Assembly: GCF_963676685.1 (NCBI RefSeq)
Contig: NC_092350.1
Coordinates: 58,156,001 to 58,220,000 of the forward strand
Source: Mytilus edulis
Lineage: Eukaryota
Length of the DNA stretch: 64,000 nt
Direction: 5' to 3'
The number at the start of each line of letters is the position of its first letter. Position 1 is the stretch's first letter. A program made the position numbers and the translations under genes. Of this stretch, positions 12,319 to 63,070 are shown piece by piece. The notes under the pieces were generated by a model. It was given only the letters and a program-made list of their open reading frames with translations, was not told the DNA's origin and did no database searches.

Positions 12319-12379
12319 ATGAAATTTTGTTGTTTGATTGTAATCATCCTCTTCACAATTCGTGTTTCTAATGGCGGAA
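12319..12379 (+). CDS. Copy A coding exon 1 (signal peptide)
   Basis: ATG at 12319, MK + hydrophobic core MKFCCLIVIILFTIRVSNGG, phase-1 donor A|GTAAGT; conserved in copy B. Confidence 0.85.
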
Positions 12380-15244
12380 GTAAGTATTCTTTATGTTTAA
12401 TCGTACACAGGTGGGTGCTGTCATCACTTATACACCATGTTCACTAAAGGCCTAAACAAGATTTTTTTTGACTGATTTTTTTTCTGCTAAAAAGGTTAGT
12501 ATGTTACGGGTTCACTGTTGAGAATAAGGCGAAAGTCAAAACTAGTTCCGCATAATTGTTAAGTTTCAACATGATTCACATCAATACATAACTGTATTTA
12601 CGTGCAAGACCACTTTTAATCAATAAATGAGACTTATAAAATATCAAAGTATACAGCGATTGTATACAAAAGAGGTAAGGGGACATTTTATATTGGAATA
12701 AAAACCAAAGACGACAAATGTTGATGTTTGAAAGACACAGTAGTAAAAAACCATAATCGTTACTTTAGTTTAAACTAGCAGTTTATATTTCGTTTGTGCT
12801 GTTCTGGTGTGCTGTCGTAAATTCATTGGAGTTGTTATTCTGTAGTTTACATGTAATAATGTACTATTATACTAATTATTTATATATTTCTATGTGCTAA
12901 TGTTTTTGTGTTTGTTTGTCCTGTCTCGTAGTGTTGTAATTTTTTAGCGGAGTTTTGCCAACTTTGAAAAATATAAGCAGGAGGTTTGACTATCCATAAA
13001 ACCAGGTTCAGCCCACCGTTTTGGTCTTAAAATGTCCCCTTTCAAGTTAGGAATATGGCAGTTGTTTCAGATAGTCCGTTTCTATGTATGTTGGCGTTTG
13101 ATGTTGTTGATGTTTAACGATTCTGTTGTTTCTGGATTTTTTCCTCTCATAGTCAATGTGTTTAAGTTTGTTACCTGGATTTTTTTTATTATAGTAAAAT
13201 TATGACTTTTGAGCAACGGTATACTACTGTTGCCTTTATTTAGTTACCAGTATCTCTATATGGAGCATGCTGAAATTGATGTAACGATTTTTTCCTTCAA
13301 TTAAATTCGACAAAAAATTATAAATAACTTAATCTAATGTTTCTTTTAATTACATCTTATAGATAAAATGTTGTTCATATGAAGAATTCAACTTATATAA
13401 AAAAAGTAATTATGAAAGGTTTGGTTTTCAATCGATATGAACCTATTGTACTTTCCATAAAAGTATTACTGCAACGAAGATTTAAGATTATAACTAAACA
13501 CATTATCCTAAAAGAGTTATTTTCTTATTGTATAACGCAGAGTTTGAAGCTCATAATGTCACATTGTGTTAAGGTGGTACCCAACACTTTCACTAAAATT
13601 GAATTAGCTCGTTTAATTTTCATAAAATTGTGTCAAAGTATTTACTTTGACCCTTTAACAAAAATTTGAAAATTTTAAAAAATTTTGAACCAACCGTTTT
13701 GTCAGAAAAATTACACTGGTTATATAGCAGTTTGACAAACACCAATTTTGATCATTGAGAAGCTTAATATTCCCTTAACAACACAACGTAATTAAAACGT
13801 TGAGCTGATTTTACAGAGTTACCTCCCTGTAGTGTTAGGTACCACCTTAAGAACTTTACTCTTTAGGACTCACTGGAGATTGTTTGTCTACAAATGGTAC
13901 ATGTGGAACAAGCGGTGTTACTTGTGTTGCTGCGTTTGGTGAAGGATGGATATATAAAGGAAAATGTTGTTATGGAAAACCATGTTGTAAATGTAAGTAA
14001 TCTTATATACCATGCGACAGTTCCTTTACTTGTCCCTGCTATTCAAATAGAATGACACATAGGCATGTGTTGGAATAAAAGATCATATTGTAAATGAAAT
14101 TAAACAATGTTGTTAGCAAATTATAGAATATCTTGTTGGTTTTCCCTCCTTTAGATAGTATTTCTTAACTGCAAAGAACTCCAATGAAAGCGAATACTAC
14201 AAACCAACTTATTTTCGCAGATACTTAGTTTCGCGTTTAGCCTTTTCTAGCCCATTTCGACGCGATTTAATTTCGCGTTCTCAAATTTACGTAATGTAGC
14301 TAAGTAAGCAAAAATCCAAGTTTTACATATTCACGACGATTTATATTCGCGGTATTTTTCTTTTCGCGACAGTCGCGAAAACAAAAATCGCTTCCAAAAA
14401 TTAGTTGGTTAACAGTAGTTAATGTTTCTTATGACGACGACAGTCCCATCTCATGTTTAGAAATAACATATACAGTGCCCTGAAAACTTTTAAATTTGAA
14501 ATTTTAAACAAGATGTTCATGATGCGATCATGTTTTTGACATTGCTGCATGTATTTGGTACTGAGATGGTTTATTGCAAAGTTGACCTTAGAATGATTTG
14601 GTTAATTTTTGTATGTCATTTAAAAACAAAATATAGCCCTTCGAATGTTTCAGTCTATATACATCAAAGCATTCGGCTTAGAGCGTACCTTGTGAAGACT
14701 TCATAAAAACGCTTTAGACGCATGAAATTTACAAAGTGTTGTTTTCATTCTTTATGCTAGAGATTTCAGAATTCTGTTTTTTTCCGTGTTTGCTTTTGGC
14801 TTCGAACTTAACTTCATATTCACGTTTACGTAGTCATTGAGGTTTTCAGGATTATGTATGCCCAGTGTATATGCTCTTTCTTCAAGTTGCGTTTGAACTC
14901 CCGTTCTTCAGTCTTGGTCTACAAACTACCGTACATACATGTTTGATATCCTTTGAATTTATTTCATTTCGATTATTTATGAAAAATGGCTGACGATATA
15001 TTTGGACGTGAATCAGCTGTTATAGGTAAATGATAAGGAAAAATTATTTAAAAACTTCTTCTTTTGAACCTAACATTCTACTAAAATATATTATTTTAAT
15101 GAAAACCTACCAAGCCTTTGCTCTAATGTATAATCTGTTGAGCTTGGTATCAGAGCAGAACTTTTATATTTTTAACAGGCACGTGCACGTACATGTAATG
15201 CGATATGTTTAATATTTTATTTTACAGTTATCAAATATAATAAG

Positions 15245-15297
<53 letters not shown>

Positions 15298-18200
15298 CCA
15301 ATCAATCAAGTGATCAATCAATCAAATTATACTTTGAAAAAATGTTAATCTAAACAAATTATTTTTGTAAATAATTCCGCTCAAGCCGGTGCTAGGAGCC
15401 GTTTTAAACTTGTAGTGAGGTTAAAGTTTTTTTTAAGCTCCGTGTTGAAGGCCTCACTTTTTGATTTTGAGAACACCAACAAAAGCGCTCTTTGTGTGGT
15501 TTTGTTTTTGGGCCATGGATAGATACCCTATATCAATTTTTTTTCTATAAATGAATTATAGGTTTCCATTTTATCAAATTAAATGTAAAAAAAGATTACA
15601 GTGGAGAGAAAAGCTAACATAACAAAAAAAAAACTAACATGGCTAAGTTTTGAAGTTTAATATAATTGGTGAGTTTAATTTATAATCTATACCCTTTTTT
15701 TTGCACAGATTTTCCTGAAAGTAAAAACTACAGCTGTGGATTTGAGACTGTTGCATCATGTGTTTTTGAGGATTCCCTCCTTGATGATTTTGATTGGTCA
15801 CGACAATCTGTAAGTTTTTCAAATATCTGGTCTGCAATTCACAAAAAATCCGTTCGATTTACGACCAATGATATATTATACGTATAGTTTGTCAAGATAG
15901 GCGGACGATATCAAAATGAATATTTAAACTCAAAAGTCGAAAGAAAATGAAATTATATGGCTCCGCCCACATAGTCCGTATTCATATCTACATTTGGGAT
16001 TAGCTGAATTTATGGAGAACAAACTTATAAGTCAATGATATTTGTTATTAAAATGATTTAATATTTTAATATCTTGTTTGTTCACAGATTGTTTTTTCAT
16101 TGTAAATGTTGTATTCTTGTCTTTTAGTTTTGCGAATATACTTTGACTATAAGCCTTTTTAAACTTTTTTTCTTTGTTACACTTTTGTTTGCTTTTAAAA
16201 TTATTAAGATTGTAACAAAATGTTGATTGCTATACCACTATTTTGACATCTTTACTTATAATATCTCCTTGTTTTGTTCACAAATCGTTGTCAATTTAAT
16301 GGAATTCTATGCGACTGTCATACAATTAGGAGATTTTGCTAGCTTTAAAACCAGGTCTAATCTACCATTTTTACATTTGAAAATGTCTGTACCAATTCAG
16401 GAATATTACAGTTGTTTTTCATTTGTTTGATGTGTTTAAGCTTTTGATATTTCCATTTGTTTACAGACATTTCTTTTTAAATTTTACTCGGAGTTGGTTA
16501 TTTCTATTAATTTACTTTTTTCATAAAGTTATTCATATCTTGGATTAACGACTTTTCGTCTGCATAAAATATAAAGTTATAGTCAATGAAACATGATCAG
16601 GGTATTTCAGCTTTGTGAGGGAGTTCAACATAGATCGAACATTTTGAAACCACGAATTACAAACTGATTATTGTCAATATGGAAAGGGTGTTATTAAATA
16701 GATTAATTATTATTTTTATTATGAATTTAAGGGCTGACAACGGCTCGTTTCATTTTTTATATAGAAAGAAACTGTGCCTTACATTGTATTAACATGAGAC
16801 AAAAACATCATGAAACTTTAAGATCATATGTGAACTACCATTTAACTTCAAAGGATGTGGGGTTACGTTTTTTTTTATAAAAAGATATTCTGATCCCCAA
16901 TTTGATGACAAAAGTATTCTGTTCAAGCAGACGACAAAAAAAACCCATTATGAATGCAAATTTCCCCATACCTTATAGTGTTAAACTTTGCTAAAATAAA
17001 TAATTTGATTGATAATAAAAAATATCCCTCCCCCTTTTGAAGTTAAATGTTTTCTCCCTAAACTGACTATATGAAGACATCTAAATGTCTTTTTTTGTGT
17101 CAGGTTTTAAATCTTAAACATAATAAACGGAAATCTAATTGTTGATCAGTGTTTAAACTTTTTATGATTTAGGGTAAGACACCAACTTCGAAATGGAAGA
17201 CTGGGCCCTTAGCAGCGGCCGAGGGGACTTATTACATATACACAGAGGCCTCTGATAGGAGTAATGAAGATAAAGCTATACTCACAACCGAAGCTACTAG
17301 CTTACAAGCTAACTTTATAAGTACGAAGTTGGCATTTAATTTCATTTCTCCAGTGATTGCGTTCATTTAAATTTATGTTAACAAAACAAATGACTGACTG
17401 GGAGAAGGTTATTACCATACTTGAATGTACATACATGCCATCAGTAATGTCAGGACTGAGACAATATAAAAAATTCAGCTCATGATGTTCAAGGTCGGTT
17501 CTAGTTTAAGTTATTTTCTTTGTGGCTATCAACTTTCGTGATTTCTGAGAAAAAAAGTTGAATCCAGAGGATATAGATTTGTAGATTAAGGATAAACACA
17601 TTTGGAATTATCTTAAACTACGTTTTTCATTGAGACGGTAATGTCATGACTGGAGGGAACACAATAAATCACTACAATGATATAAAACAAAAAGGGTTTG
17701 TCAGGAATGGTGAGGTGTGTTATACTTGGAAAACCTTAAAATTTGCTTTATTTCACTTATATACCATATTATTTCCCGGTAAAAACATGCAGATTTGGAG
17801 GATACTATATCCCATTTTACCGTTCTTGCATGAAATATTCTTTCTTGATGTCTTTAGGTGTTATTCGTGGCTCGGTACTTATACATCCCGTTAATGTGTT
17901 TGTATTATCTTTCCTTTTTGCAAAGTCAGCACCAAATCTTTGAGCTCACGCTTGACTTACAATGAATTAATCGAGGATGATTTGAAAATTTGAAAATTGA
18001 ACTATTCACAACGAATCGTATAACATATAATGTCTTAATATTGAAGAACATGCCATATTTATCACACCTTTTGTATTAAAATGTACGTTTGTGCAAGGTC
18101 AATAAAAGCCGGGAGTTATCGAAATATCAATACTATTAGATCTCTTTATAGTATCTTGATTATAAGCTTTATTATTGCACATGTTGCAGCATGCCCTTAT

Positions 18201-21043
18201 TGTCTGTCCTTCAAGTACCATATGAGAGGGGTTGACATAGGATCATTAGAAGTATTTGCTGGGGATAAAACATCTTCTTTGACAAGTATCTGGAAAAAAA
18301 TAGGACCACAAACCGAAGATCCCGTTAAATGGGACACTGGAAATATAGACATACCACAATATAGTAATCTTGTTGTAAGTATAACTGTGGATTCATTTAT
18401 TTTCTTGGGTACCAATTTTCGTGGATTATGGAAAACTATTCAATTCCGTGGTTTTCCTAAAGTCTGCATAGAAACCAATGGAAAATTGTAATTCTTTGAA
18501 CATTTAAATTCGTGGTTCCCATTTACCAACGAGATCCACGAAGATTCGACGACAAATACTGTATCCATTGTATATAAATCATATATCAAATTAAAACTGC
18601 AACAGTAACTATGGTTATACCATAACAAAAATATCATGTGTAAGTATAAAAATTAACACAAAATAACTGAAAATGAAAGAAATGACAGTATAAACTTACA
18701 TTATTTTTGCGTCAGATAATTTGTTTAAACCTTGAGATATACCATAAAAGTACATATTATCCCGAGTTGTATGTTTTTGTTGCCGATCAAAATCTATAAA
18801 TATGTTCAATACATTTATTTATTAAGGGTAGCATGGCGATTTTTTTTTGCAAAAGGGATGGAATTCTCTTACTGGCTAAATCATGGTAAAAAATATTTAC
18901 AGAAATATTTTGAAAAGTAATATTTCCCTCTGTACTGTCTGGATTTCCCAAATTATAAAGTCAATAACCTGTTGTTCAGTGGTTGTCGTTTGTTGATGTT
19001 GGTCATACGTATATTTGTCTCATTTTTTGAAATAGATATTCGACCATTATTTTTCCTGCTTAAAATTGCTGTACACTCATTATGGGGACATTTTTAGCGT
19101 GCTGTTCGGTATTAGCCAAGTCTCTGTGTTAAAAGTTATACTTTGACCAATTATGATTTACTTTGTACAAATCGTTACTCTAATGCAGAGTTATCTCTTT
19201 TGGCACTCATACCACATCTTCATATATCTACTTAATATATTAAAAATACATTTTATTCACTATATTTAGTAAAGAAAGCCTTTTGTATTTACTCTATCAA
19301 ATATGGTTCTTCCACATTTTACAAGGCGGCACAAGTGTTCCCACTTTTTGTTTAATTTAGATTCAAATTACGTGGTATCTTTTTGATTCGCGTCACGGTG
19401 CGGAGCTATTTGTTTCAGTCGACATACACGCCATCTTGAGTAAATTACCTATCACATATAGATTCTGATAGATTGCATCATGATGCGGCAGAGATAATGC
19501 AACACCTATTGGCTAACAAAATGACATTAGAAATTACAGACTTTTCTCGTCTCTGGATAAGACATCAAATGCCGGAAAATTAACTATATGTATTTCAATT
19601 CCGATCAACTGTCGTTAATTCATGTTCGTTTTGATATGCAGTATGCACGATTTGCTTCAATTGCTAAACAAGGTTCCTATACAATGCATTATCTGTATTT
19701 CATAACTTCTGATAATCTAAGCACACCTCCAGTGTCGTGTTTATTTTTAATTGTTTTAATTTTCAACAAGTAATGAAACATTTTAGTGGCATTGGTATGT
19801 AACGCACACTCTTAAAGTAAATCCATAAATGCATCTAAATATACCACATTTGATAATACTAAATCAATAACAACATGTGAACATATTACCTTAAATTAGG
19901 AAAGAGCGAAGCAGTCCGTAGCTTTTCAGAAAACTCAAAACGGTATTGCGTTAAGGTTTACAACTTCTGAGAGAAGCATACTAGATTACACTTGGAAGTA
20001 CATGTAAAACACTTTCAAGTATAAATGATATAGGTGAACAAAAAAGGATTACACACTATGAAGTTGGTGTCTTTGCATGTCAATTATATTTTCAAATATT
20101 CTTGTTTTTTTCCAGGTCACAATAGTAGGGTCCTGTGGTGTTGGAGCGAGGGGTGACATTGCCATTGATGATATTTTACTAAAGGCTGGTGCATGTTGTA
20201 AGCGTTACTTTATTATTATCATTGAGAATGGAAATGGGGAATGTGTAAAAGAGACAACAACCCGACCAAAGAGCAGACAACAGCTGAAGACCACGTACTG
20301 ATGTGCAATTTACAATGTTATCAGGTAGTTTGTTCCAATCGGTTAAAGTTCCTTGGAAAATAGGATTCTTTTCTGTTCTGTGTTTTGCAAGACGGAATGT
20401 GAAAGCTGTTCGAGTTTGATTGTCTTGTTTGTCTTTTTTGTTTGATAAATGTATTATTCGTAGGTATTGTAACCTTTTCGTGTTTCCAACGCTTGAAGTG
20501 TTTCCATATTTTTTAGTAACTTACAACAATACATGGATAGCATTGAAAAAGTTCAAAGGAGGGATTCACGTTTTGTTACTAAAAAATATGGAAACACTTC
20601 AGGCGTTGGAAACATGTTCCAACACCTTGAATGGTGCAGCCTCTCTTACAGAGGAAAATATTCGAGATTAGTAATGCTATTTAGAATTGAACACGAAAAG
20701 GTTACAATACGTATATATTCGTATTCTACCTCTCGCTACATGTATAATAAAAAAATCGATGACAAACGTCCAAACCAGGATTGAAAAAAAAAATCTACGA
20801 CTACCATGAAGTTTATCTTAATTTAATGATGTTCGCAAGAAGTGCTTTTGAAGTTTTCCCAGATATACAAAATCCACTCGTTTTATCCATTTTCATTATT
20901 TAGTGCCGTTACAATATTTTCCTCGCTAACCCCTTCTTTTCTTTATATTATGTTATGACATATAGTTTAACAATTACTATCTAAAATGCTATAAAATCCT
21001 TGTTATATTTTTATATTTTTTTTCATCTTTTTTAGATGCTTGA
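12319..21043 (+). CDS. Copy A: secreted beta-defensin-like (Cys-rich) + MAM domain protein, spliced, 236 aa
   Basis: Manual splice model join(12319-12379,13867-13992,15709-15809,17173-17320,18190-18374,20116-20197,21036-21043) = 711 nt, all GT..AG introns, phases compatible. Protein: MKFCCLIVIILFTIRVSNGG-RLTGDCLSTNGTCGTSGVTCVAAFGEGWIYKGKCCYGKPCCK-YFPESKNYSCGFETVASCVFEDSLLDDFDWSRQS-GKTPTSKWKTGPLAAAEGTYYIYTEASDRSNEDKAILTTEATSLQANFI-TCPYCLSFKYHMRGVDIGSLEVFAGDKTSSLTSIWKKIGPQTEDPVKWDTGNIDIPQYSNLV-VTIVGSCGVGARGDIAIDDILLKAGACYA*. MAM hallmarks: CxFE..C, FDW, TPxxxxTGP, GxYxYxEAS, CLxFxYHM, GDIAIDDI..GxC. Confidence 0.88.
13573..13846. mobile_element. Non-autonomous Kolobok-type MITE
   Basis: TTAA TSD (13569-72, 13847-50); TIR ggtggtacc(c/t)aacact 15/16; single TTAA at the paralogous site in copy B (~62039-62042). 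Confidence 0.85.
13867..13992 (+). CDS. Copy A coding exon 2 (beta-defensin-like Cys-rich domain, 7 Cys)
   Basis: ctttag| acceptor, T|GTAAGT donor, phase 1-1; C-x6-C-x6-C-x13-CC-x4-CC. Confidence 0.85.
14195..14418. mobile_element. TACTGT..ACAGTA-type MITE
   Basis: tactacaaaccaact...agttggttaacagta imperfect TIRs with internal TTCGCG repeats; not seen at the equivalent place in the copy B intron. Confidence 0.55.
15245..15325 (+). repeat. (AATC)n microsatellite
   Basis: Direct reading. Confidence 0.95.
15709..15809 (+). CDS. Copy A coding exon 3 (MAM domain N-terminus)
   Basis: ttgcacag| acceptor, |GTAAGT donor; NYSCGFE..SCVFED..DDFDW (inside ORF 15666-15887). Confidence 0.88.
17173..17320 (+). 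CDS. Copy A coding exon 4 (MAM)
   Basis: tttag| acceptor; GKTPTSKWKTGP..EGTYYIYTEAS..KAIL. The 3' boundary is less certain (A|GTACGA donor at 17321). Confidence 0.8.
18190..18374 (+). CDS. Copy A coding exon 5 (MAM)
   Basis: ttgcag| acceptor, |GTAAGT donor; CLSFKYHMRGVDIGSLEV..IW...W (inside ORF 18081-18491). Confidence 0.9.
18383..18570. mobile_element. MITE fragment (ACTGTGGATTC terminus), related to 53503-53698
   Basis: actgtggattcatttattttcttgggtaccaattttcgtgg matches the TIR family at 53503-53698. Confidence 0.5.
20116..20197 (+). CDS. Copy A coding exon 6 (MAM C-terminus)
   Basis: ttttttccag| acceptor, T|GTAAGC donor; GDIAIDDILLKAGAC (inside ORF 20077-20301). Confidence 0.9.
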
Positions 21044-21225
21044 GAGTAAACAGACAAAGAAAGAACACATTAGAACCGAAACAATAATTGTTCGATATTG
21101 ACAGTTAATTATACATAACACTGACCATGTTATATTTAAAAAAAAAAAGTTAACTTATAACAATGAGCATAATCCATTGTAACCATTGAATTAGAATTAA
21201 TAAAACTTATTCAACAAAACTAACC
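21036..21225 (+). CDS. Copy A terminal exon (YA-stop at 21041-21043) and 3' UTR
   Basis: Long polypyrimidine tract + tttag| at 21035; completes a phase-1 codon then GCT TGA; AATAAA at 21199-21204. The 3' end is approximate. Confidence 0.65.
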
Positions 21226-35950: not shown

Positions 35951-38900
35951 ATGAAATAAAGTTTTCTTGCTGTGTTAAAGACCAATTGGTGGCCTTCTGC
36001 TGATTTCTGCTCTTTGGTCGAGTTGTTGTGTATCATGTAGAGTTTAGAAAAATACCAGTTCATTTCTTTCTAACCTAAATTTTGAAAAGGTTGTGTGGCA
36101 TTTGTTATCGTTTGCCGAACGCTGCAAAAGTAGAAACAAATACATCGTTCAATCAGTGTTTACTGACCCTTTTCGAACTTTCAATAATGCATGCAAATGT
36201 TGTTTCTAAACATACTTGTTACGGGGTTATTAAATGCCGCCGGGTTCCTTCAACCAACATAGTAATAAATCACTAGACTTTTCACCGTTTTCTCTATTTC
36301 ATATGTATGGAAGTGTGATGCCTATAATTATGATTATTACTAACAGTGTTTCGGGATTTTTTGCTCATACTGGTAATTAAGCATGGATCCCTTTTAAAAA
36401 GTCTCCCAACTCATGCAACTATTGCCTTGATTTATCGAGTTATTCTTTTATATTTGTTTTGGCACCAGGGCAAAGATTTCACGGTATTGTATGTTTTTTT
36501 GCATATTGTTCAAATGTTTTCTTACAATTTAACTAAAATTCAAGGTTGAAGTTAGAAACGAGTTCAAATGTTTTCTTATAAATTTTACTAAAATTCAAGG
36601 TTGAAGTTGGAAACGAATGTAGCGTTGTACTAACAAACGATGAACGACATTTGTATCACGAATGACGCTTGTCTGTGAAATCCATGCCCAAGTTTGCAAA
36701 AATGTGAAAACATTTTCGAATATCTGAACAAATACTTTCAATATGTTTCAAAATACATAGGTTAATGGGGACAGGCCAATTTTTCGCGCCTTCACCCTTT
36801 TTGACAAAATCCTTTTTTTGTTTGTTTTTTCCATTAATTTCAATTACTTTCGTGTTTTTCAGTGTACTATGAACATAAAATATACTAGAAATAATTTGCA
36901 ATCGCTATTTACTTTCAATTCACAGCGATCACTGATACATCTCATAGAGAGAAGGTACTTCGCTTTGTACCTTATCATCTATTTTCCTACGCGAAATCTA
37001 GGGAGGAATCACTTTTCTAATTTATTACATTTTGTAAACAACTCATTCCCTTTGGGTCAGTTGTCATGAATCGTTTCCGCAAATATTCCTCTGTTTAAAG
37101 TGTCATCACTCTAAATATATTTGACGTCTATCGACAGAACAGATCAGTTTTGCTCGTCGTATCGTCGTATTTTGATTCGTAACTGACGGAAGTATTGTAT
37201 GGGCGACAATTCTAAATCCAGTTCCTTCATCTGATGTTTCTAATGTTATTGAACAACATCATAAGGTACGAGAGTTTCCGATAACAGTATAAACAAAAAA
37301 TAAACAGTAAACTTTCTCTACTTTATTTATACTTTAAACTGTTGTGAAGAACTCTGGTACATTATCGTGTTGTTCAATAACATTGATAGTAATTAAGTTC
37401 ATTTATATGTTTCGGAGTTTAGTGTGACGTCCATTTTATTTGAACTAGTACTCAACTGTCCTAAGAGGCCAGCTGAAGCCCACTTACGAGGTCGGGATCT
37501 TCTCGCTGTGTTGATGGTGGCCTTGGCTGTTCTCTGCTGTAATGGGACGTAAGAAAAAGGAAGGGACAACAGTTATTGTATCCCTGTAATGTAAAGTTAA
37601 GAGAAATACTAATTTATCACACACTAAAGATTTTCATATTTTGCAATAGACTTCAGAGAAAAAATATACAATTGAAATATATATGTATATATATTTTCTG
37701 TGCTTTGAAAGAGACATGTGAAATTCCGATGATGACGTCAAAAAAAAAAGTGTGAATCAGATAATCAATATATAACAACACCAAAAAGTACATACTTTGC
37801 ACAATCAATTCGATAAACGAAGGAAAATATAGTTTGAACAAATCATGGTTGCATACCTTGCAAGTATCATTTAAGCACTTTAAAATCAATGACTGCGGTT
37901 AGTTCATTTGATCATGTTGATATATGCCTTTTTGTGCTTTTTGGTTAAATATTTGCTTGTTTTATCGGTAGAAAGATACTTATGGTACTTGTACATTCTG
38001 TAATTATTGTTTATGATATTCCCGTATTGTTGTCTTTCATTTTGCTAATGTGCTGTTTCTTTATGCCTTTTAAATTTGGTGTTACTGTGAAAACCTGTTT
38101 GTTGCTCGTCTTTTATTTTTGCTATATTCTTTGTCTATATGCCTTTTCATGTTTCTTCGTTACATAAATGACGTGGCTCTGTACTTATATATCCCGACAT
38201 TTTGTTATTGTACTATGGTAATTTTTTGTATTCTTGTCTTTGATATTTATTAATATGCTTGGTCTGTATGCCGTTGTGTGTATCTTTATTTCATGTTTGT
38301 AGTTTTTATAGGGATTGGCACTGTATTTTTGGCACTTTTTACCTATTATGTTTGTTGTTTTGTTCGCGCATGATTTTGATTTTGCCATTTGATAAACGAC
38401 TTTCCGTTTTGAATTTTCCTCGTAATTCAGTATTTTTTGTGATTTTACCTTTTAATTTGTGAGTATTACAAAATACGTTATCAAAATATCAAGACCAAAT
38501 AACATATTTAATCAAATATTCTATTATTATTCCTTATTCTGTATTTTTCATGCAAAAAATATGGTGATGTAAAGATAATTGTATATAAAATAAGCTGATT
38601 ACAAAGACATTTCTGTAAAAAAAAAGTACCAATGGGACGAATACAAATATTCCCGCTTGTTCAAACAATCCAAGGACGACATTAACAGTAGTCCATTCTC
38701 TGTTATGTCAAATTTAGGGAAACACCAGTTTATTACACACTTAAAATTTTCATATTTCACTCTAGACTTCACAGGAAAATATATAATTGCAGTATATATA
38801 AAATTGAGAATGGAAATGGGGGATGTGCCAAAGAGACAATAACCCGACTAAAGAGCAGAACACGTGGACATGGACGTCATACTTAACTCTAAAACATATA

Positions 38901-42169: not shown

Positions 42170-45100
42170 TCAGACATTCAGTTCATTAAATTGCTTTAAT
42201 AGTCTGTCAATTTTATATCCTAAAAAGTTTCTTATTTCAATAAAAGTTCTGATCTCTTGTCTTAATATTTTGAGTGGTTGTATAACTTTTATTTTTTTGT
42301 AAGACATATAGTATACTTTATATATTGTGTAATGGATAATAGTTAAAAGTAAATTTAGTTCATAGTACTCTTTATCATGTATTTTATATCTCAAAGCTAT
42401 GCTTTTTAGATTAATAACATGTCTTCCAATATTTAATTTCTTAAGAATGTGTTGTACTTTTTCCCAGAATAATTCAAAATATGAACATTTGAGGAAGAAG
42501 TGTTCATAATTTTCTATATGTTTACAGTGTAAGCAGGTATCTGTTTCTACTATATGCCATTGTTTTAATAATTGATTACAGGGAAGTATATGATAAAGTA
42601 GTTTCCATCTAAATATTTTATATCTATTATCATCTAAAAATGTAAAAATAAATTTTAATGTTTGATATGCTAGATTAGTATTTTCTAGTGTAACATATGA
42701 TTTCCATTTTAAAAAGCCAATAGGTGTTTGCATTTCCTTTGCTTCAAGTAAGAAGATATAAATATCATGGTTATTTAGGGTTTGAATAGGTTTTTTGTTG
42801 ATGATGTTCAGATTTTCTTTTGTGTTTATATTGACTTGTGTATGTTTAGAAGGTGAGTTTTTGATGATATTGGTCCACTGTTTTGGAATAGCTTTCTTCA
42901 GTTTTGTAAGCTCAGCTATCCAGTTTTCCTTATTTTTTAGTTTACTTAGTATGATGTCTGAGTTTATATTTCCATCTTTATCTAATAAATCATTTATAAC
43001 CAGAATGTTGCTTTGTATCCAGTTTTTAAACAGTAAACATTTATTGTTGATGTTAATATATTTATTGCCCCATATTATTTGTTTCCTTATTTCCCAAAAC
43101 ATTGTAGGCTTTCGTATAGTTTTTTCTTTTGCTTTTATCCAGGTCTTTATTAACTGCATATAAAACTATGGGATTTATTTTATAATATCTTTTTCAATTA
43201 TATTTATATTGGCTATATTCATCTTGAATATTAAAAAATTATCTCCTAACGTATTCAAAAAATATTTTGGAATTATCTTCCAATTTTGCTCATCATTTTC
43301 TTCAAACAATAATTGTTTTATCCATTTTAATTCAATTGTTGAAATATAGGTATCTATACTAATCATTTTTAATACCGCTTCCGTATAATTTTGCGACAAA
43401 TTATCTCTTTTAATCATATCTATTTTTCCATTCCATATTTAATGAATGGCTATTATTCATTTTGAATTTATTGAACCATAAAACTAATTTTTGACTCCTC
43501 ACATTGAATAATCCGCGAAGCGGATTATGTAAAATGTGAAGAGTCAACAATTAGTTTTATGGTTCAATAAAATCAAAATAAATTATTGCCATTCATTATA
43601 AATAAATTTCTATAAAAAATAAGGCTCAAAGAATTTTCTATATTAATTATATTAAAACAATAACAACGTACACACAAGTTGGCGTATGAATATACAACGT
43701 CAGAGTGGGCGTGTCGCCATAAAAATTGAAAACATTGAAAATAAAACTAATAATTTTAACCAATCAGAAGACAGTAAATACACCAACTTTATTTATATAG
43801 TTATATATCTTACTTTTAATGTTTTGTATAAAATCTTTTGGTAATATCATATTGCTTGCTATATATGTTAAGTTTGGCAGTATTAGAGACTTGACTACAG
43901 TTATTCTTCCTAGCATACTTAGCTTTCTTTTTGACCACATGTTTATAATTTTTTCAATTTTATCAGCTTGTTTTTGACAATTAAGTTTTTTACAGTTTTC
44001 TTTATTATAGCCAAAATAAATTCCTAAACTTTTTAGGTCCAATTGATTCTTTCGAATTTATCTTTAGTATGTTTAAGTCTGCCTAGTCAAATTCCTTCAG
44101 TTTTAGTTCTATTTAATTTTAATCCTGAGAATGAGCCAAATGTTTCTATTAAGTTCATGACTAAAGATATTTCCTTTTTGGATTTTAAAAATAAGGTTGT
44201 GTCGTCAGCCAATTGACAATTTTTATACTACAGTCTTTTCCATTTAATTTAATTTCGAACCCTTTGATATTTTTCTCAGATCTAATTCTGCATGCTAATA
44301 CCTCCACCGCGAGTACAAAAATCAAAGCGGACAACGTACATCCTTGTCGAATTCCACGACAGATCGGAAAGGGGTTTGATATCCACCCATTATTTACAAT
44401 GCACCCTGATATACCATTGTATATAGTCTAAACCCAGTGTATAAAATCTTTTTTAAATCCAAATTTGTTTAATGTTTGTATCATGAAAAGCCATTCAATT
44501 GAATCAAAAGCTTTTGAAAAATCTAGAAATAAAATTGCTCCTTCAACATTGAAGTTTTCAGCATAGTCAATGACATCTTGTATTTGTCTTATATTAAATC
44601 CAATGTATATATTTTTTACATAGCCCTTCTGGTCCGCATTAACAATATTGGGTAGAACTTTTTTTAGTCTTTGTGCAAGTGTTTAAGCAAGAATGTTAAC
44701 ATCTACATTTAATAAAGTTATTGGCCTATAGTTATCCAGAGATTTTGGATCATTTTTTTTAAAGATCAATGAAATTGCCCCCTTTTTTTGTGAATTGGTC
44801 AAACTTTTCTTGTTATATGACTCATTATATACTTTGGTTTGTATCTTTTGAATTTGGGGCCAAAATTTTCTGTAGAATTCTACATTAAGTCCATCTAAAC
44901 CTGGTGCTTTATTAAGTTTCATTTCAAACACTGCTTCTGAAATTTCTTCTGATGTCACTAGCCCTTCTAAACTATTACTATCTTTATCTGAAAGTTTTTT
45001 TTTCTATTTTAGTATTTTGAATATACTCTTTAGTATGTAAGTTATCTTGATTTGAGGATTTATATAGTTTTTCATAATATTTTACTTCCTCTTTTAAAAT

Positions 45101-46339
45101 TTCTGTTTGGTCTGTTATAGTATTGCCTTTATTGTCATACAATTCTTTTATAGTTTTATTTATTTGTCTTGATTTTTCTAAATTCAAGAAAAAAGCAGTA
45201 TTTTTTTCACCTTCTTCTATCCATTTTGCCCTTGACCTTATTTGAGCTCCTTTAGTTTTTTCAAGGTATAATTGATTTTAATTTTCAGATATATTATTTA
45301 TTTGCGAAAGTAGTTCAGAATTATTAGTACTTTCACTTTGGTCTAATTTAGTATTTAGCTTATTAAGGTCGTTTTAATAAGTTTGAATTTTATCTCTTTT
45401 TTGTTTTGCTTTTCGTTTGCCAAAATCTAGACTGATGTCCCGAACTTCAGATTTAAAGTTGTCCCACAGTATACCTAAATTTTCTGTCGTTTTTTCTATT
45501 TTTTTCATAACATTTTATTAGTTTTTCTATATTACAACAGTAGTCTCTATCATTCAGTATTGATGAATTTAATTTCCAGTATCCTTTTCCTTTGTTTACT
45601 TCTTGAGTTCTGATTTTTAATGAAATACCGTTATGGTCTGTTGATTTTAATATAATAGGCCTTATATCTGCTTTGACTATTTGTGATTTACATTCTTTAC
45701 TTACAAGGAAGAAGTCGATTCTAGTTGCTTCTTATCTTGATTTTCTACGCCACGTATATTGAAGTTGTGTTGGTTTTTTTTATCTCTCCATATATCTATG
45801 AATTTGAAATATTTTATGAGCGTTTTAAGCCCGTGAACTGGTTTGTCGAATTTGTTTTTTGTTTTTTTATTTTTTGTATCATTAATTTTTAGAATATCAT
45901 TAAAATCTCCTCCCATTATAATTTGACCTAAGCTATGTTCTAGAGTCCAGTCTTTTACTTTTTTAAAGAAGGCATTTCTTTTTTTTGTTATATTTGGTGC
46001 ATATATATTTATAAGAGAATAGACATTATCTCCTAGTTCAACATTAATTGATAGATAACGTCCCTCCTGATCTTTAAATTCATTTATAATGTTATATTTT
46101 GTTTGTTTTGTAAACCAAATAGCTACACCCCTTGATGCGCTACTACCCCAACTATGAAAAATTTCTCCAGGTAAGTCATTATTTAAATTGTCATTCATAC
46201 TTCTGGTAAAATCTGTTTCTTGCATCATTAAAATTTGACATTTTTGCTGTTTGCACCACTCAAATAATCTTTTTCTTTTTTCAGATTGCAGTAAACCTTG
46301 AGTGTTTACAGAACATATGTGAAGTGGATTAGGAGCCAT
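42170..46339 (-). pseudogene. LINE ORF2 (APE endonuclease - reverse transcriptase - C-terminal Zn finger), disrupted
   Basis: SVNTQGL, QET, INIYAPN, GGDFN, DIWR (APE); KAPGLDG, YRPITLLN, GIRQGC, QLADDT (RT); CLHC..E..EHFFLKC; multiple frameshifts/stops and an insertion at 43438-43793. Confidence 0.92.
43438..43793. mobile_element. Hairpin-bearing non-autonomous insertion inside LINE ORF2
   Basis: Splits NYI|WNGK; TA on both sides; 157-bp imperfect palindrome 43441-43597. Confidence 0.75.
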
Positions 46340-46949
46340 TTGTCTGAAAAGGTAAGTTTGTTTACTTTTTTTATTTTCCTTCATTATTTGTTTGTTCTTT
46401 CCGTTTATTTTATTTATTCCGATGACGTACCTATGTATTGTTAACTCTGTCCTTAATTTAAATGACCTAGTTTGTTGGACCTTATAACATCTCATGTGTG
46501 TATTGACACTGTCACATGATGAGTGTAAATATAAACAGTACCACATGATTTTGCTATCATGTGACGTTTGTAAATAAAAACAATACCTTGTGTTTTCTAT
46601 ATTAGTTGATTCAAATTTGTTTATTGTAATGAGGGTTTTGCATAAGTTCTGATTTTTTCCCTGTTTAAATACCATAAACTAGTATGTATCTTGTAACAAT
46701 ATTTTTCATCCTTGCATGCAACTTAGCAGCATTTAAATTTAAATGTATACACTTGTTCACCAACTTATTTTTGCATACAATACAAATAATGTGACATCCT
46801 TTTGTCGCATTGGTTTCATTAAACCACATGCAGACTAAATATTTTTGTATATTTGTTTTGTATAAACATAAGAACATTGTTAATACAATGAGATATTTAC
46901 AATTAAAAAAATACATTGTATATTTAATGTGTTATTGTGTCATATTACT

Positions 46950-54089: not shown

Positions 54090-56050
54090 GTTCAATCTTA
54101 TAGCTAAAACACTAGAAACGTATTCAGAAGATCCCAACAAGGACTTATTATTCATACCATGAATAAAAATGTTCTGATTTGGTTGAAATTCTAAAACATC
54201 AGTTACATATGGTTGCAAATGAGAACCTCTTTTAAAAATCATTGTCCAAATTTAAAATGACGAGGAAGGCCACTTTGGAACTATCAAAGTGCCTCTAGCC
54301 TTACATAGAATCAAATGTTTAATTGCTCTACAGACAACAGAAATTGGAGGAACAATCCAATTAACTTCATTATTCCAATTTTGCGTGAACGCATCAACTT
54401 CTTCAACACCTGGATTCCAGAATTTAGAATTAAACCTGGGTGATTTTTTATTTAAATTACTCGCAAACCTGTCCACAGTATGCGGACCCCACATATCAGC
54501 TATAAATTAAAAAAAATCTACGCTTGTTCCCCAGTCTTCTATATCAATGATTTTTGAAATATAATCAGCTTTAGTATTTTCAGATCTCGGGATCCAAACA
54601 ACATCTAACGTAATATTCAATTCAGAACACAACTAAAAAATATGCATAGCTATCTCTTGTAAATGTACTTTTGTTCTTACTTTCTGAACAATGAAAACAC
54701 AGTTATTATTATTTGTATGCCATTTAACACATTTATTTCCTAAACGGTTTTTAAAATACATCAATGCCAACAAAATAGCTTGACGTTCTCTCCATGTAGA
54801 ACTCTGTATGGACTCTTGTAAAGTCCACATCTGATGAAAATTATTAGAGTCAATACCTATCGAGTAAGCACCAGCAGCTACATTACTAGCATCGGAATAT
54901 ACAATCACGTGGGGAAAAGAATAACCTGCTAAATGTTTTATGTTCAATCTTAAAATGTTATTCAGCCAAAATGAGAGCTCATTGAATACACAATCGGGAC
55001 ATTCCAATATTAACTTTAAATCCCACTTTACTCTGTTTTCAATAGCCCAGTGTAAATAGCGGGTCATTAAACTAGTTATGTTACCCATGACTGGAAACAT
55101 AGAAGTTACCTTTCCCGTTACCTGAACCAATTTTCGTGCTGTGAAATTAGGAAAGTTATTCAAAACATCAACCAATGATGTTAGGGTATTTTCAATCCGT
55201 CTATCTGATATACTAATTGAAAAATCAGACGAATTCCAAACTAAACCTAACCACTCTAAACATTGGACTGGTTCAAAAATAGATTTGTCCATGTTAATAA
55301 GAAACCCTGCTTCTAACAAAGACGTTTTCACAAAAGATGAACATTCGGAAGCTTCTTGTTTATTTTTACCCATTCCAAGTCCATCATCTAAATGAAGCAC
55401 ACTATCTACGCCATTTTCTCGCCAGTATTTTACGATTGGACGTGAACATTAAGTGAATAGATATGGAGCAGATGAAAGACCAAAGGCTAACACTGTAAAA
55501 CAGTAAAATTTATTGTTCCAGCAAAATCCTTAAGATCAAACTTAAACTGATAGCAATCTTTTGTGAAATAGTTTAAAGCCACTTTCCAGTCTTCAAATTT
55601 TATTCTTTCTTTTTTAATAAAAACATTCAGTTCACTTAAATCCAAAATCAGACGTTTTTTGCTCGAACTTTGAACTGCAACACTAAGCGGACTTACAACA
55701 AATGGTTGAAATGGAGTTTCAATAACACACCCGATATTAAGTAATTCTGAAATTGCTTCATTTACAAATTTAGAATGGACATTAGAAGCTTTGTTATTCT
55801 TAAATGACATAGATGTAGGAGTCTGCAAAAAAGGAATAACGTATCCACTTTTGATAGTATTTATAACGAATTCATTAGCACCTATGTGTTTCCAAAATTG
55901 TATGTGCTTGCGTAAACTATATTTCACCCCTTTTGCGACAGATGAAATATCAATATTATCAAAATATTTTGCATGTGACATAAACAGTTCAAACTGTCCG
56001 TAAAGATTACTTTCATCTAAAAAAGTAGTATAAAAATACTTATCATTAAT
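54090..56050 (-). pseudogene. DIRS pol: RT - RNase H - methyltransferase-like, disrupted
   Basis: GYVIPF, VSPLSV, KKRLILDL, FDLK, LHLDDG (RT), YSDAS and SSTWRE (RNase H), WGPHTVDRFAS..NSKFWNPG..VDAF..W..NWIVPP..PKW (MT). Confidence 0.85.
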
Positions 56051-56855
56051 TCTGTAGCCTTGTTGTCCCTGGGACACCTGGTTTAGTACTGAATAGGAGG
56101 GGGCACTGAGTTCGCCAGTGACCAAGTTGGTTGCAGTTGTAACAGATGTCATGAGATGAGGGTTCCCTCTGTCTGCCGGTCCGAAAGGGCGGCTGTTGGT
56201 AGTTGTTTTGTCTAACGTTATGTTGATTAGGCATAGGTGCAGAAGGAGCAGAAACAGTAGCTGTAGCGGATCTATAAGGATGAGGTCTTTTCTTTTCCTT
56301 AATACTCCTGATGGCACGGGTTTCTGCAGAACGAATGCGCTTCTCATCTTCAGAGTCGAAGGCAAGGTCGTCGCTTTCATATTCACGGACGGTTTTCCAT
56401 CCTGCGGGAGATTTGTCTGCAATGCGGATGAGTTTCTTTCGCTTCTTAACCTTAGGGATAGCTCCAGATACCAATTTAAGACATGCTGTATCTTCATCAG
56501 GAATACGCTTCTGGAGCTTAACAAAGTCGGCCATGATTTCACAATTAAAGTTGAATTATATCTGGTTGCCCTCACCTTTGAGTTTAACTGAAACTTCCTG
56601 CTTGAGTTTGGTAGCAAAATTCTCGTTGCCAACTGTCAAATCTTTGTGTAGAGTAGCGATCTTCCCGTCAAGATAGGTTTTAAACAGAGAGAAAGTATCC
56701 ACCAAGTCGTTATTCCCAGTATGATGTGCAGAAATACCATCACGCAACGAATGTACACTAGTACCAGCTGGCAGAGATTCATGGTCGGAATCTAGAAGTT
56801 TCTCGGAGTCAGACATACCACAATAACGAATGCTGCTACGTTGAACTATAGGCAA
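56046..56855 (-). pseudogene. DIRS gag-like ORF (stop-interrupted), CCHC knuckle
   Basis: KRKKLIRIADKSPAGWKTVREYESDDLAFDSEDEKRIR motif and CYNCNQLGHWRTQC. Confidence 0.8.
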
Positions 56856-60699: not shown

Positions 60700-63070
60700 A
60701 TGATGAAATGTTGTTGTTTGATTGTAACCATCTTCTGCGCAATTCGTGTTTCTCATTGCGGAAGTAAGTAACAGTTTATGTTAATTATTAAAGAGGTGGG
60801 TGTTATTACTCATACACTATATAAAACAGAATATGTGATATGATTGCCAATGAGACAACTCTCCACAAGAGACCAAATGACACAGACATGAACATCTATA
60901 GGTCACTGTACAGCCTTCAACAATGAGCTTTACCATACTCAATAAATTACCAAATGACTAAACAAGATGTATGGACTGTTGTTTTGTCTGCCAAAAAGTA
61001 ATTTTGTGACAGGTTCACTACTTAGAATATCTTGGGGCAAAAGTCAAAACCAGTCCCGCTTGCATATTAAGTTGAATATGATTTCACAGCAATACATAAT
61101 TTTATTTATGTGCAAGAGCACGTTAATTTAATCCATTAGACTTGTATACAATAAAGGTGAGGAGACATATAAAGTAGAATACAAAACAAAAGTCTTCAAG
61201 TGTTAATGTTTGAAGACACAATAGGAAAATGCACATAAGCGTAGCTGAAGGTGAAACTCGCTTTTTTATTTCGTATGTGGTGTCCTGGTGGGTTGTCGTA
61301 AATTCACGGAAGGTGTCCGTTGTTATTCTGCGGTTTAAATGTTGTAGTGTACTATTATATTATTTATTGATATACATTTTTCTAGGGTTATCATTTTAAC
61401 GGACATTTTGCCAACATTATTATAAACATGATATAAGTGGGAGGTTTGACTATCCAAAAAACCAGATGTAACCAACCATTTTGTTTTTCAGAAATATGGC
61501 AGTAGTATCACATATTGCGTTTCTAGGTATATTGGCGTTTGCATTTGTTGTAGTTCAGTGTTTCTATTGTTTTTTTTCCTCTCAGAGTTGATGTGTTTAT
61601 CTCGATTTAAGTTTGTTACCTGGATTTGTATTTGCTTAGTCAAGTAATGACTATTGTACAGTGGTAAACAACTGTTGCCTTTATTTAGTTACCGGCATCT
61701 CGATATGGGTTTTTCTGAAACTGATGTAACGAATGTTTCCTTCAATCAAATTCGAGTAAAAAAAACTTAATTCAATGTTTCTGTCAATTAATCAATTAAT
61801 TTATCACAATAAAATGCTGTTTACATGAAGAATTCATCTTATAATTAAAAAACAAAATCGGTATAGTGAGATTTTGTTTTCAATCGATATGAACCTATTG
61901 TTCCTTTTTTTTAAGTCATTAATGCAATGAAGAATTTTACTTAAAGATAATGACTACTAAAATCCAGTTTATTTCCTAAAAAATGTTAATTTCTTATGGT
62001 ATAATGCAGAGTTTCGAGCTTTCAATGTCACATTGTATTTAAGTACTCTACTATTTAGGACTCACTAGAAATTGTCTGACTTCAAATGGTAAATGTGCAA
62101 GAAAAGGTGTTGCTTGTGATGACGCGTTTGGTGAAGGATGGATAGACAAGGGAAAATGTTGTAATGAAAGACCATGTTGTATATATAAATGTCCAAGTAA
62201 GTTAACACAGAAAACATGCGATAGCTCTGGTCCCTTCTATTCAGAAGTCAAACATAGGCATGTATTGGAAAAACATCATGCTGTAAATTAAATTTAACAA
62301 TGTCATATTGTAAGCAACTTGTGTGATAGTTTGTTGGTGTCCTCAAATTCCAAGAACACCAATAAAAGCGAGAAGTTCACGTGTTTGTGAATTGAATTGA
62401 GCCATCATTAAGGATACACCGGAAGAATGAGATTAAATTGTAAGAAGTTATTTAATAATTTCTGCTAAGTTTGGGGATTATAACCCGTTATTTTATAACT
62501 AATTTTTGAACCATAACGATTTGAACACATCGCGATTTGATTTATGTGATCTGAAAAAAATTCAGAAATGGAATCATTTAGTAACTCGTCCTAATAACGG
62601 CTACCTCTGTGCAACTTTGCTTACATGACAGGTTTTTTACATGATTCAAATGACCGATTTCATCCCGTTCTTTGTTTTTTAATCTACAGTTACACCTCTG
62701 CAGCTCATTTGTTTTTTGTTTGTGTTTTTTTGTGGTGTTGCTGTGCATGTATTTACTTTGTGTCATGAAAAGATAACAAATATAATTGTTTTTGTTTTTT
62801 CTAATAATAAATTATTAGTTTCAATTATATCAAAATAAATAATAGACAAACTAAAACAAAACAATAAGATAACTGTGAAGAGAAAGCTATCATAACGAAA
62901 ACCACGACTTAATTTTGAAGTCTAATAGAATTAGTCCATTTTAATGCCTAATCTATATTTATTTTTGCACAGATTTATGTAGAAGTGCAAACTACAGCTG
63001 TGGATTTGAGGATCATTCATGTGTTTTTCAGTTTGATACCCTTGGTGATTATGTATGGTCATATAAAACT
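60700..63070 (+). CDS. Copy B (paralog): secreted defensin-like + MAM protein, 3'-partial (continues beyond window)
   Basis: join(60700-60763,62059-62196,62973-63070,...): MMKCCCLIVTIFCAIRVSHCG-RLTRNCLTSNGKCARKGVACDDAFGEGWIDKGKCCNERPCCIYKCP-NLCRSANYSCGFEDHSCVFQFDTLGDYVWSYKT. Same intron phases as copy A, canonical GTAAGT donors, and the introns also align to copy A. Confidence 0.85.

Follow-up and report, generated by a model that had tools for sequence, protein, structure and literature searches.

Domains of the beta-defensin type are known to occur as free peptides, in tandem pairs, and as the C-terminal half of big defensins. In collectins and ficolins, which are secreted, a shared Cys-containing N-terminal segment is followed by a C-type lectin or fibrinogen-like domain. 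Here we analyze a 64,000-nt stretch of the Mytilus edulis genome (contig NC_092350.1 of assembly GCF_963676685.1, forward-strand positions 58,156,001 to 58,220,000; hereafter "the window"), in which a plus-strand gene at 12319-21043 encodes, in order, a signal peptide, a module with seven cysteines, one complete MAM domain, and a two-residue tail. This locus is probably a member of a multigene family, so far found only in Mytilus, of small secreted two-domain proteins that carry a defensin-like head.

The closest described systems include the big defensins, two-domain proteins of molluscs, horseshoe crabs, and amphioxus with one beta-defensin-like domain. Their Cys-rich exon is preceded by a phase-1 intron, a trait common to big defensins and beta-defensins (PMC7203481). 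Big defensins also occur in Mytilus. In these proteins, a hydrophobic N-terminal domain comes first and the defensin domain follows at the C-terminus, whereas the module described here is N-terminal, directly following the signal peptide and preceding a MAM or lectin domain, and, unlike big defensins, it is unmatched by PF14862. Its cysteine spacing (C-x6-C ... x13 ... x4-CC) presumably resembles that of big defensins, and no big-defensin structure appeared in the match lists of our fold searches. With vertebrate beta-defensins the module shares a two-exon layout with a phase-1 intron, a cationic character, a C-x6-C start, and a terminal CC pair. It differs from them in having seven cysteines instead of six and longer C2-C3 and C3-C4 spacers, in being unmatched by PF00711, and in forming the N-terminal domain of a mollusc protein of ~236 residues rather than a free peptide; inspection of the linker following the module revealed no obvious dibasic cleavage site. 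The likeness to collectins and ficolins is one of functional analogy; the proteins described here have no collagen-like stalk and their N-terminal part is a predicted folded domain of 41 residues. Finally, the repertoires of C-type lectins, FREPs, and Sushi-lectins cataloged in bivalves overlap directly with our set, as many module-headed members are those same Mytilus C-type lectin domain proteins (PMC10140915). The bivalve C-type lectin survey sorts proteins by their Pfam domains and does not mention defensins (PMC10140915). The shared head that distinguishes the proteins described here from the surveyed repertoires is invisible to Pfam.

The window belongs to a chromosome-scale contig (C7, 93,447,462 bp) of the 1.37-Gb Mytilus edulis assembly, with a GC content of ~31% and no runs of N. 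Read directly, seven in-phase exons on the plus strand give 711 coding nucleotides, i.e., 236 codons and a stop. Exon 1 (12319-12379) supplies the ATG start and the signal peptide in 20 codons plus 1 nt and ends in phase 1 at a GTAAGT donor; the signal peptide was recognized by inspection, from its hydrophobic core and the small residues that come next. This exon codes for the same residues 1-20 as the RefSeq protein of the same locus (XP_071122528.1), and homologs are found at three paralogous loci (L013, L015, and L018) and at 60703 in the window. Exon 2 (13867-13992), behind a pyrimidine-rich acceptor, holds the cysteine module (C-x6-C-x6-C-x13-CC-x4-CC) in 41 full codons with symmetric phase 1-1 boundaries and a net charge of +2. 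In exon 3 (15709-15809), a short linker leads into the MAM domain, which continues through exon 4 (17173-17320, ending in phase 1 with the donor GTACGA at 17320/17321), a central piece in exon 5 (18190-18374), and a last piece in exon 6 (20116-20197), ending 1 nt past the final MAM cysteine. Exon 7 (21036-21043) is a micro-exon in which two codons (Tyr-Ala) are completed before a TGA. A likely polyadenylation signal, inferred from the AATAAA at 21199-21204 on the same strand, lies ~156 nt past the stop, in a 3' flank that is kept in paralogs. The donors of exons 1, 2, 3, 5, and 6 are all GTAAGT or GTAAGC, and that of exon 4 is weaker (GTACGA). Measured against all five paralogs examined, the acceptor region of exon 5 (18180-18189) has 9 inserted nt in the window, with the AG and the frame kept.

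The same exon series recurs in at least six of the paralogous loci that were fetched, and this recurrence, together with the RefSeq junctions detailed below, puts it far beyond chance. A preliminary description of this DNA, made from the sequence alone, had proposed the seven exons, their phases, and the cysteine pattern, all of which are present as described, and its view of a compact secreted architecture (signal peptide, cysteine module, and a single MAM domain, with no transmembrane segment or catalytic domain) is likewise borne out; a glycosylphosphatidylinositol (GPI) signal is absent as well. That description had also called the gene hidden; this part does not hold, as both the gene and its family are in RefSeq under the name "MAM domain-containing GPI anchor protein 1/2-like".

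Structural predictions point towards a defensin fold for the module encoded by exon 2. Its seven cysteines are invariant in 28 genomic copies, and AlphaFold2 applied to the alignment of these copies yielded a model with a short helix and a small sheet (mean predicted local distance difference test (pLDDT) score of 86.8). Compared to the PDB with Foldseek, 17 of 19 rows among the matches listed for this model were beta-defensins, crotamine, or a defensin-like sea-anemone peptide, with a template modeling score of 0.62 and a root-mean-square deviation (rmsd) of 1.6 Å for hBD-1. VIA-align, which is independent of Foldseek, retrieved 20 chains at Z ≥2 from 48,161 representative chains, every one of them defensin-type (beta- and alpha-defensins, crotamine, and platypus and sea-anemone defensin-like peptides), with crocodile CpoBD13 as the top match (Z 4.6, 1.8 Å over 34 residues, 32% identity). 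A further structural comparison gave Z 5.0 for hBD-1 (1.8-1.9 Å, 35/36 residues aligned, 31% identity), and across the vertebrate beta-defensins matched (hBD-1, hBD-2, CpoBD13, and AvBD3/AvBD11) Z ranged from 4.0 to 5.0 and rmsd from 1.8 to 2.1 Å over 34-36 residues, with 26-32% identity. At the sequence level, the sole match of the module profile among all PDB sequences was platypus defensin-like peptide 1 (1b8w, E 0.024), and the nearest ESM Atlas cluster was Defensin_beta, at a weak score of 0.77. Six of the module cysteines can be mapped to the positions that pair as C1-C5, C2-C4, and C3-C6 in defensins, which would leave one of the first CC pair spare. All 31 modules sampled have a positive net charge, from +1 to +8, and the layout of a signal-peptide exon, a phase-1 intron, and a Cys-rich exon is the same as in defensin genes.

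Several observations weigh against a defensin assignment. No Pfam family, the defensin models (PF00711, PF13841, and PF14862) included, matches any of the 28 copies up to an E-value of 10; a search of the whole genome with PF14862 also returned no match, yet the controls likewise gave none, so this second negative carries no weight. The module has seven cysteines where trans-defensins have six (PMC7203481), and the charge of the window copy is modest (+2). In addition, the fold is predicted for a tiny Cys-rich domain, for which Z of 4-5 and Foldseek E-values of 0.4 and above are weak in absolute terms. A full-length fold of the closest complete homolog (P0035, from a 13-row alignment) was discarded as unusable for the head or its orientation, with a mean pLDDT of 55.6 and residues 11-113 below 50. 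On balance, the predicted structures make it quite likely that the module adopts a beta-defensin (trans-defensin) fold, and they match neither EGF nor ShK, the kind of fold that the preliminary description had named as refuting its defensin-like assignment. Common ancestry of the module with defensins is a separate matter, on which we consider the chances close to evenly balanced.

Beyond this locus, the module exon has at least 113 matches in the genome. For at least 15 of these, a homolog of MAM exon 5 follows on the same strand, 2-9 kb downstream. When 20 further copies were fetched with 10 kb of downstream DNA, C-type lectin exons were found for 12/20 and Sushi exons for 7/20 (5 also with C-type lectin), and a single copy had neither. 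The head is thus not specific to MAM proteins but a shuffled exon on more than 100 lectin-like genes, a feature that the preliminary description had missed. A consistent picture emerged from protein databases, where the module profile matched 27 proteins among 1.84 billion representatives. In these, a signal peptide and the module precede a MAM domain, a C-type lectin domain, Sushi plus C-type lectin domains, or, in a Mytilus trossulus protein, a fibrinogen-related domain. The named matches are all from Mytilus (edulis, galloprovincialis, trossulus, californianus, and coruscus), and the names given to members by NCBI include "uncharacterized", "P-selectin-like", "macrophage mannose receptor 1-like", and "fibrinogen C domain-containing protein 1-like". 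Most of the 31 copies sampled have an AG acceptor 2 nt ahead of the module (phase 1), and most have a GT donor 1 nt after it; such symmetric phase 1-1 flanks are the classic geometry for exon shuffling. In a tree of 28 module exons (41 columns), most of the branching lacks resolution; the partner labels nonetheless cluster, with 7 changes compared to 14.2 when shuffled, a pattern compatible with one or with several acquisitions of each partner.

The window itself contains part of a second family member on the plus strand, with a signal-peptide exon at 60703-60762, a module at 62061-62183, and a first MAM exon near 62984-63061, the rest of the gene lying just past the window (locus L017). In RefSeq, this gene corresponds to P0059 and its isoforms (XP_071121486-95), which are full length and end in ...C-DAGE. 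Many other models of the family (P0032, P0033, P0010, P0004, P0002, P0003, and P0055) run past a splice donor at their end or continue into unrelated 3' exons, and this systematic mis-modelling may explain why the shared head escaped notice. One module copy, at L030 (G000:C11:24234391-24244390), has its first cysteine changed to Ser and a non-GT donor, with none of the four partner domains within 10 kb, and is, from these sequence features, probably a pseudogene; in a related protein (P0008), a fibrinogen-like part lies upstream of the module. As to precedent, we found no paper that describes bivalve MAM, C-type lectin, or fibrinogen-related proteins with a defensin-like head, and defensin-like/MAM transcripts from mytilid transcriptomes, which the preliminary description had mentioned, could not be traced in the literature. 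Nor did our searches return functional or expression data on the family. The locus and its MAM paralogs are already annotated and hence not new; it is the shared-head arrangement that was found in no paper.

The second domain of the window gene was assigned by running the Pfam MAM profile (PF00629, 158 positions, gathering score 26.4 bits) exon by exon. Matches were colinear across exon 3 (profile positions 1-24, 12.8 bits), exon 5 (73-125, 26.9 bits), and exon 6 (132-157, 14.6 bits), with exon 5 alone exceeding the gathering score. Exon 4, searched singly against Pfam, gave no match and aligns with the equivalent exon of PF00629-bearing paralogs. By inspection, the MAM cysteines fall as pairs in exon 3, at the start of exon 5, and in exon 6, where the window copy has one additional Cys replacing an Arg of the paralogs. 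Full-length paralog proteins are 228-247 residues long, carry PF00629, and end 1-4 residues past the last MAM cysteine. MDGA1 and MDGA2, from which NCBI derived the name of the window gene, both contain one MAM domain. MDGAs have, in addition, six immunoglobulin (Ig) domains, a fibronectin type III (FNIII)-like domain, and a GPI signal. In contrast, the window gene (12319-21043) has no Ig or FNIII-like exons and no GPI signal and ends two residues past the MAM domain, and its MDGA-like name reflects the best MAM match only. A scallop MAM paper that we considered concerns a meprin-like Cd-binding protein and is not relevant to this gene.

The 3' end of the gene is likewise conserved across the family. 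Four C7 paralogs were compared, and all share the exon-6 donor (N|GTAAG, phase 1) that directly follows the last MAM cysteine; a paralog on C12 (L016) has this donor, again in phase 1, shifted 3 nt downstream. Around 21036, the DNA is 87.7% identical to that of paralog L014 across ~500 nt, and conservation of this region, acceptor included, extends to L013, L017, and L016. In the paralogs, the terminal exon reads AT-GCT-GGA-GAG-TAA (x-Ala-Gly-Glu-stop), and protein models carry the matching tail: P0059 from RefSeq ends in ...C-DAGE and the M. coruscus protein P0035 in ...C-NAGK, while the chromosome-12 version of the tail, seen in P0029 and P0030, is ...C-TNP. The micro-exon at 21036-21043, proposed in the preliminary description, is therefore homologous to the terminal exon of RefSeq paralog models; the window has TGA where the paralogs have GGA, hence its tail of two residues. 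With this terminal exon confirmed, there is no room for a transmembrane segment or a GPI signal. Extension of exon 6 by reading through its donor (20198-20298) was considered and rejected: every paralog compared conserves a phase-1 donor no more than 3 nt away from the last MAM cysteine, and the read-through peptide is part of a dispersed repeat with copies at 38803 and 36029 and in paralog introns. This repeat lies in intron 6 just past the exon-6 donor, where its open frame looks like a C-terminal continuation of the MAM domain; the repeat occurs in the window at 20230-20298 (+), 38803-38859 (+), and 35988-36029 (-), and in the paralogs at 9012-9170 of L013 and 6082-6180 of L014.

Whether the window copy still yields a full-length protein depends on the end of exon 4. 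The RefSeq protein of the locus, XP_071122528.1 (161 aa, Mytilus edulis, "MAM domain-containing GPI anchor protein 2-like"), was found by searching with one full-length relative and reproduces the junctions of exons 1-2, 2-3 (13992/15709), and 3-4 exactly. Two points speak against the seven-exon gene: the model is unspliced at 17320, running 16 codons further to a stop at 17368-17370, and junction support is limited to RefSeq models, which lack the exon 4-5 join at this locus. RefSeq reads through exon 4 because the family donor is destroyed in the window copy. At the ancestral donor position (17308/17309), the window has AAG|CT where the four paralogs alignable at that donor have AAG|GT or CAG|GT, a mutation that went unnoticed in the preliminary description. 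Of the GTs ahead of the stop, only that at 17321, 12 nt downstream of the lost donor, preserves phase 1; splicing there (donor 17320/17321) would add four residues and alter one other, within a stretch free of indels in all paralogs. With the family donor changed from GT to CT and one in-frame GT left, the full-length product is unproven, and the two outcomes, a full-length protein of 236 residues made via the cryptic donor or a truncated one of 161 residues with half a MAM domain, appear about equally likely. An alternative reading goes further and takes the copy as decaying or disabled, with intron 4 kept, a 161-residue product whose half MAM domain is unlikely to fold, and exons 5-7 as relics. 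We give this slightly less than an even chance. Besides the donor loss and the RefSeq read-through, it draws on the remaining in-frame donor (GTACGA) being the weakest of the gene, on the Arg-to-Cys change in exon 6 and the early TGA in the last exon relative to paralogs, and on the failure to find an ortholog above 65% identity among other Mytilus protein sets; together, the donor loss, the Arg-to-Cys change, the early stop, and the missing ortholog are compatible with relaxed constraint on the sequence. Conversely, the frame is still open in exons 5, 6, and 7, whose splice sites are intact and whose MAM residues are conserved, use of the cryptic donor brings back the exact frame, and the ratio of nonsynonymous to synonymous rates (dN/dS) is ~0.37 relative to L013 (exons 2, 3, 5, and 6), a value that averages two lineages and does not look neutral. 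A second dN/dS estimate, relative to L014, was discarded for a misaligned exon 3. Also against decay, read-through ends are seen in several RefSeq and older models of the family and may be annotation artefacts.

The family as a whole is built on a cassette of two exons, one for the signal peptide and a phase 1-1 exon for the 41-residue cationic module with seven cysteines. In the MAM version, this cassette is followed by four MAM exons and a micro-exon adding a tail of 2-4 residues. We propose that the family members are soluble recognition proteins. The variable C-terminal domain, here MAM, would bind the target, and the shared defensin-like head would give a common second activity, either contact with microbial or cell surfaces or linkage of chains via the odd seventh cysteine. 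The family would probably have originated by exon shuffling of a defensin-type two-exon unit. A competing explanation holds that the head does not derive from defensins and is instead a lineage-specific Cys-rich N-terminal assembly domain, cross-linking lectin-like subunits via the seventh cysteine, with the defensin likeness due to convergence or predictor bias. The odd number of invariant cysteines in the 28 copies suits such a role, as do the consistent position of the module N-terminal to a recognition domain, the absence of any stand-alone peptide among the database representatives (two short matches, P0002 and P0003, are donor read-throughs), the modest charge of the window copy, and the failure of every Pfam defensin model to match. 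We nevertheless consider this explanation unlikely: three independent searches place only defensin-type folds at the top, the best at 29-32% identity, the sole PDB sequence match is a defensin-like peptide, and the intron phase and two-exon layout are those of defensin genes. An assembly role and defensin ancestry are, moreover, mutually compatible. At the other end of the range, the module may be a true descendant of a big-defensin/beta-defensin exon, mobilized with its signal-peptide exon in front of at least four kinds of recognition domains to make more than 100 Mytilus "defensin-headed lectins" that join recognition and effector functions; this more far-reaching version is possible but falls well short of an even chance. 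As for the setting in which the proposed recognition proteins would act, C-type lectin, fibrinogen-related, and Sushi domains combined with a defensin-like head are typical of invertebrate immune recognition. By analogy with these partner domains, an immune role of the family is plausible. The same domain combination argues against a role in feeding or digestion, under which the family would consist of secreted binding proteins of the mucosa or digestive gland that trap or sort food particles. This last option appears improbable; in its favor, the digestive-gland transcriptome of the mussel Mytilisepta virgata is enriched in the Pfam MAM domain, among other annotations, and lectins of bivalve mucus have been linked to food-particle recognition (PMC5549309).

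Elsewhere in the window, the interval between the two family members is repeat-rich. Three long open frames on the minus strand (42170-43159, 45701-46675, and 54633-56632) look like retroelement remains, one of them with a CCHC zinc-knuckle motif. Across the whole window, no Rfam family was detected at gathering score, and no tRNA was found.

The value of these observations lies in the family, the window locus being a modest and possibly impaired member. A predicted defensin-fold exon recurs as the shared N-terminal head across a very large set of lectin-like proteins restricted to one lineage, and this head is missed by current annotation because Pfam has no match for it. If the defensin assignment is correct, the family would represent a new architecture for the trans-defensin superfamily and a testable case of defensin exon shuffling, as the symmetric phase-1 exon shares the intron phase of defensins. 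Were the module a true descendant of a defensin exon, the exon-shuffling route by which beta-defensins have been proposed to arise would have a living example in this family. Dozens of Mytilus proteins now listed as "uncharacterized", "MDGA-like", "P-selectin-like", or "mannose receptor-like" would be regrouped as one family, and, for mussel immunity, this would suggest a way in which many binding specificities may be coupled to one shared function.

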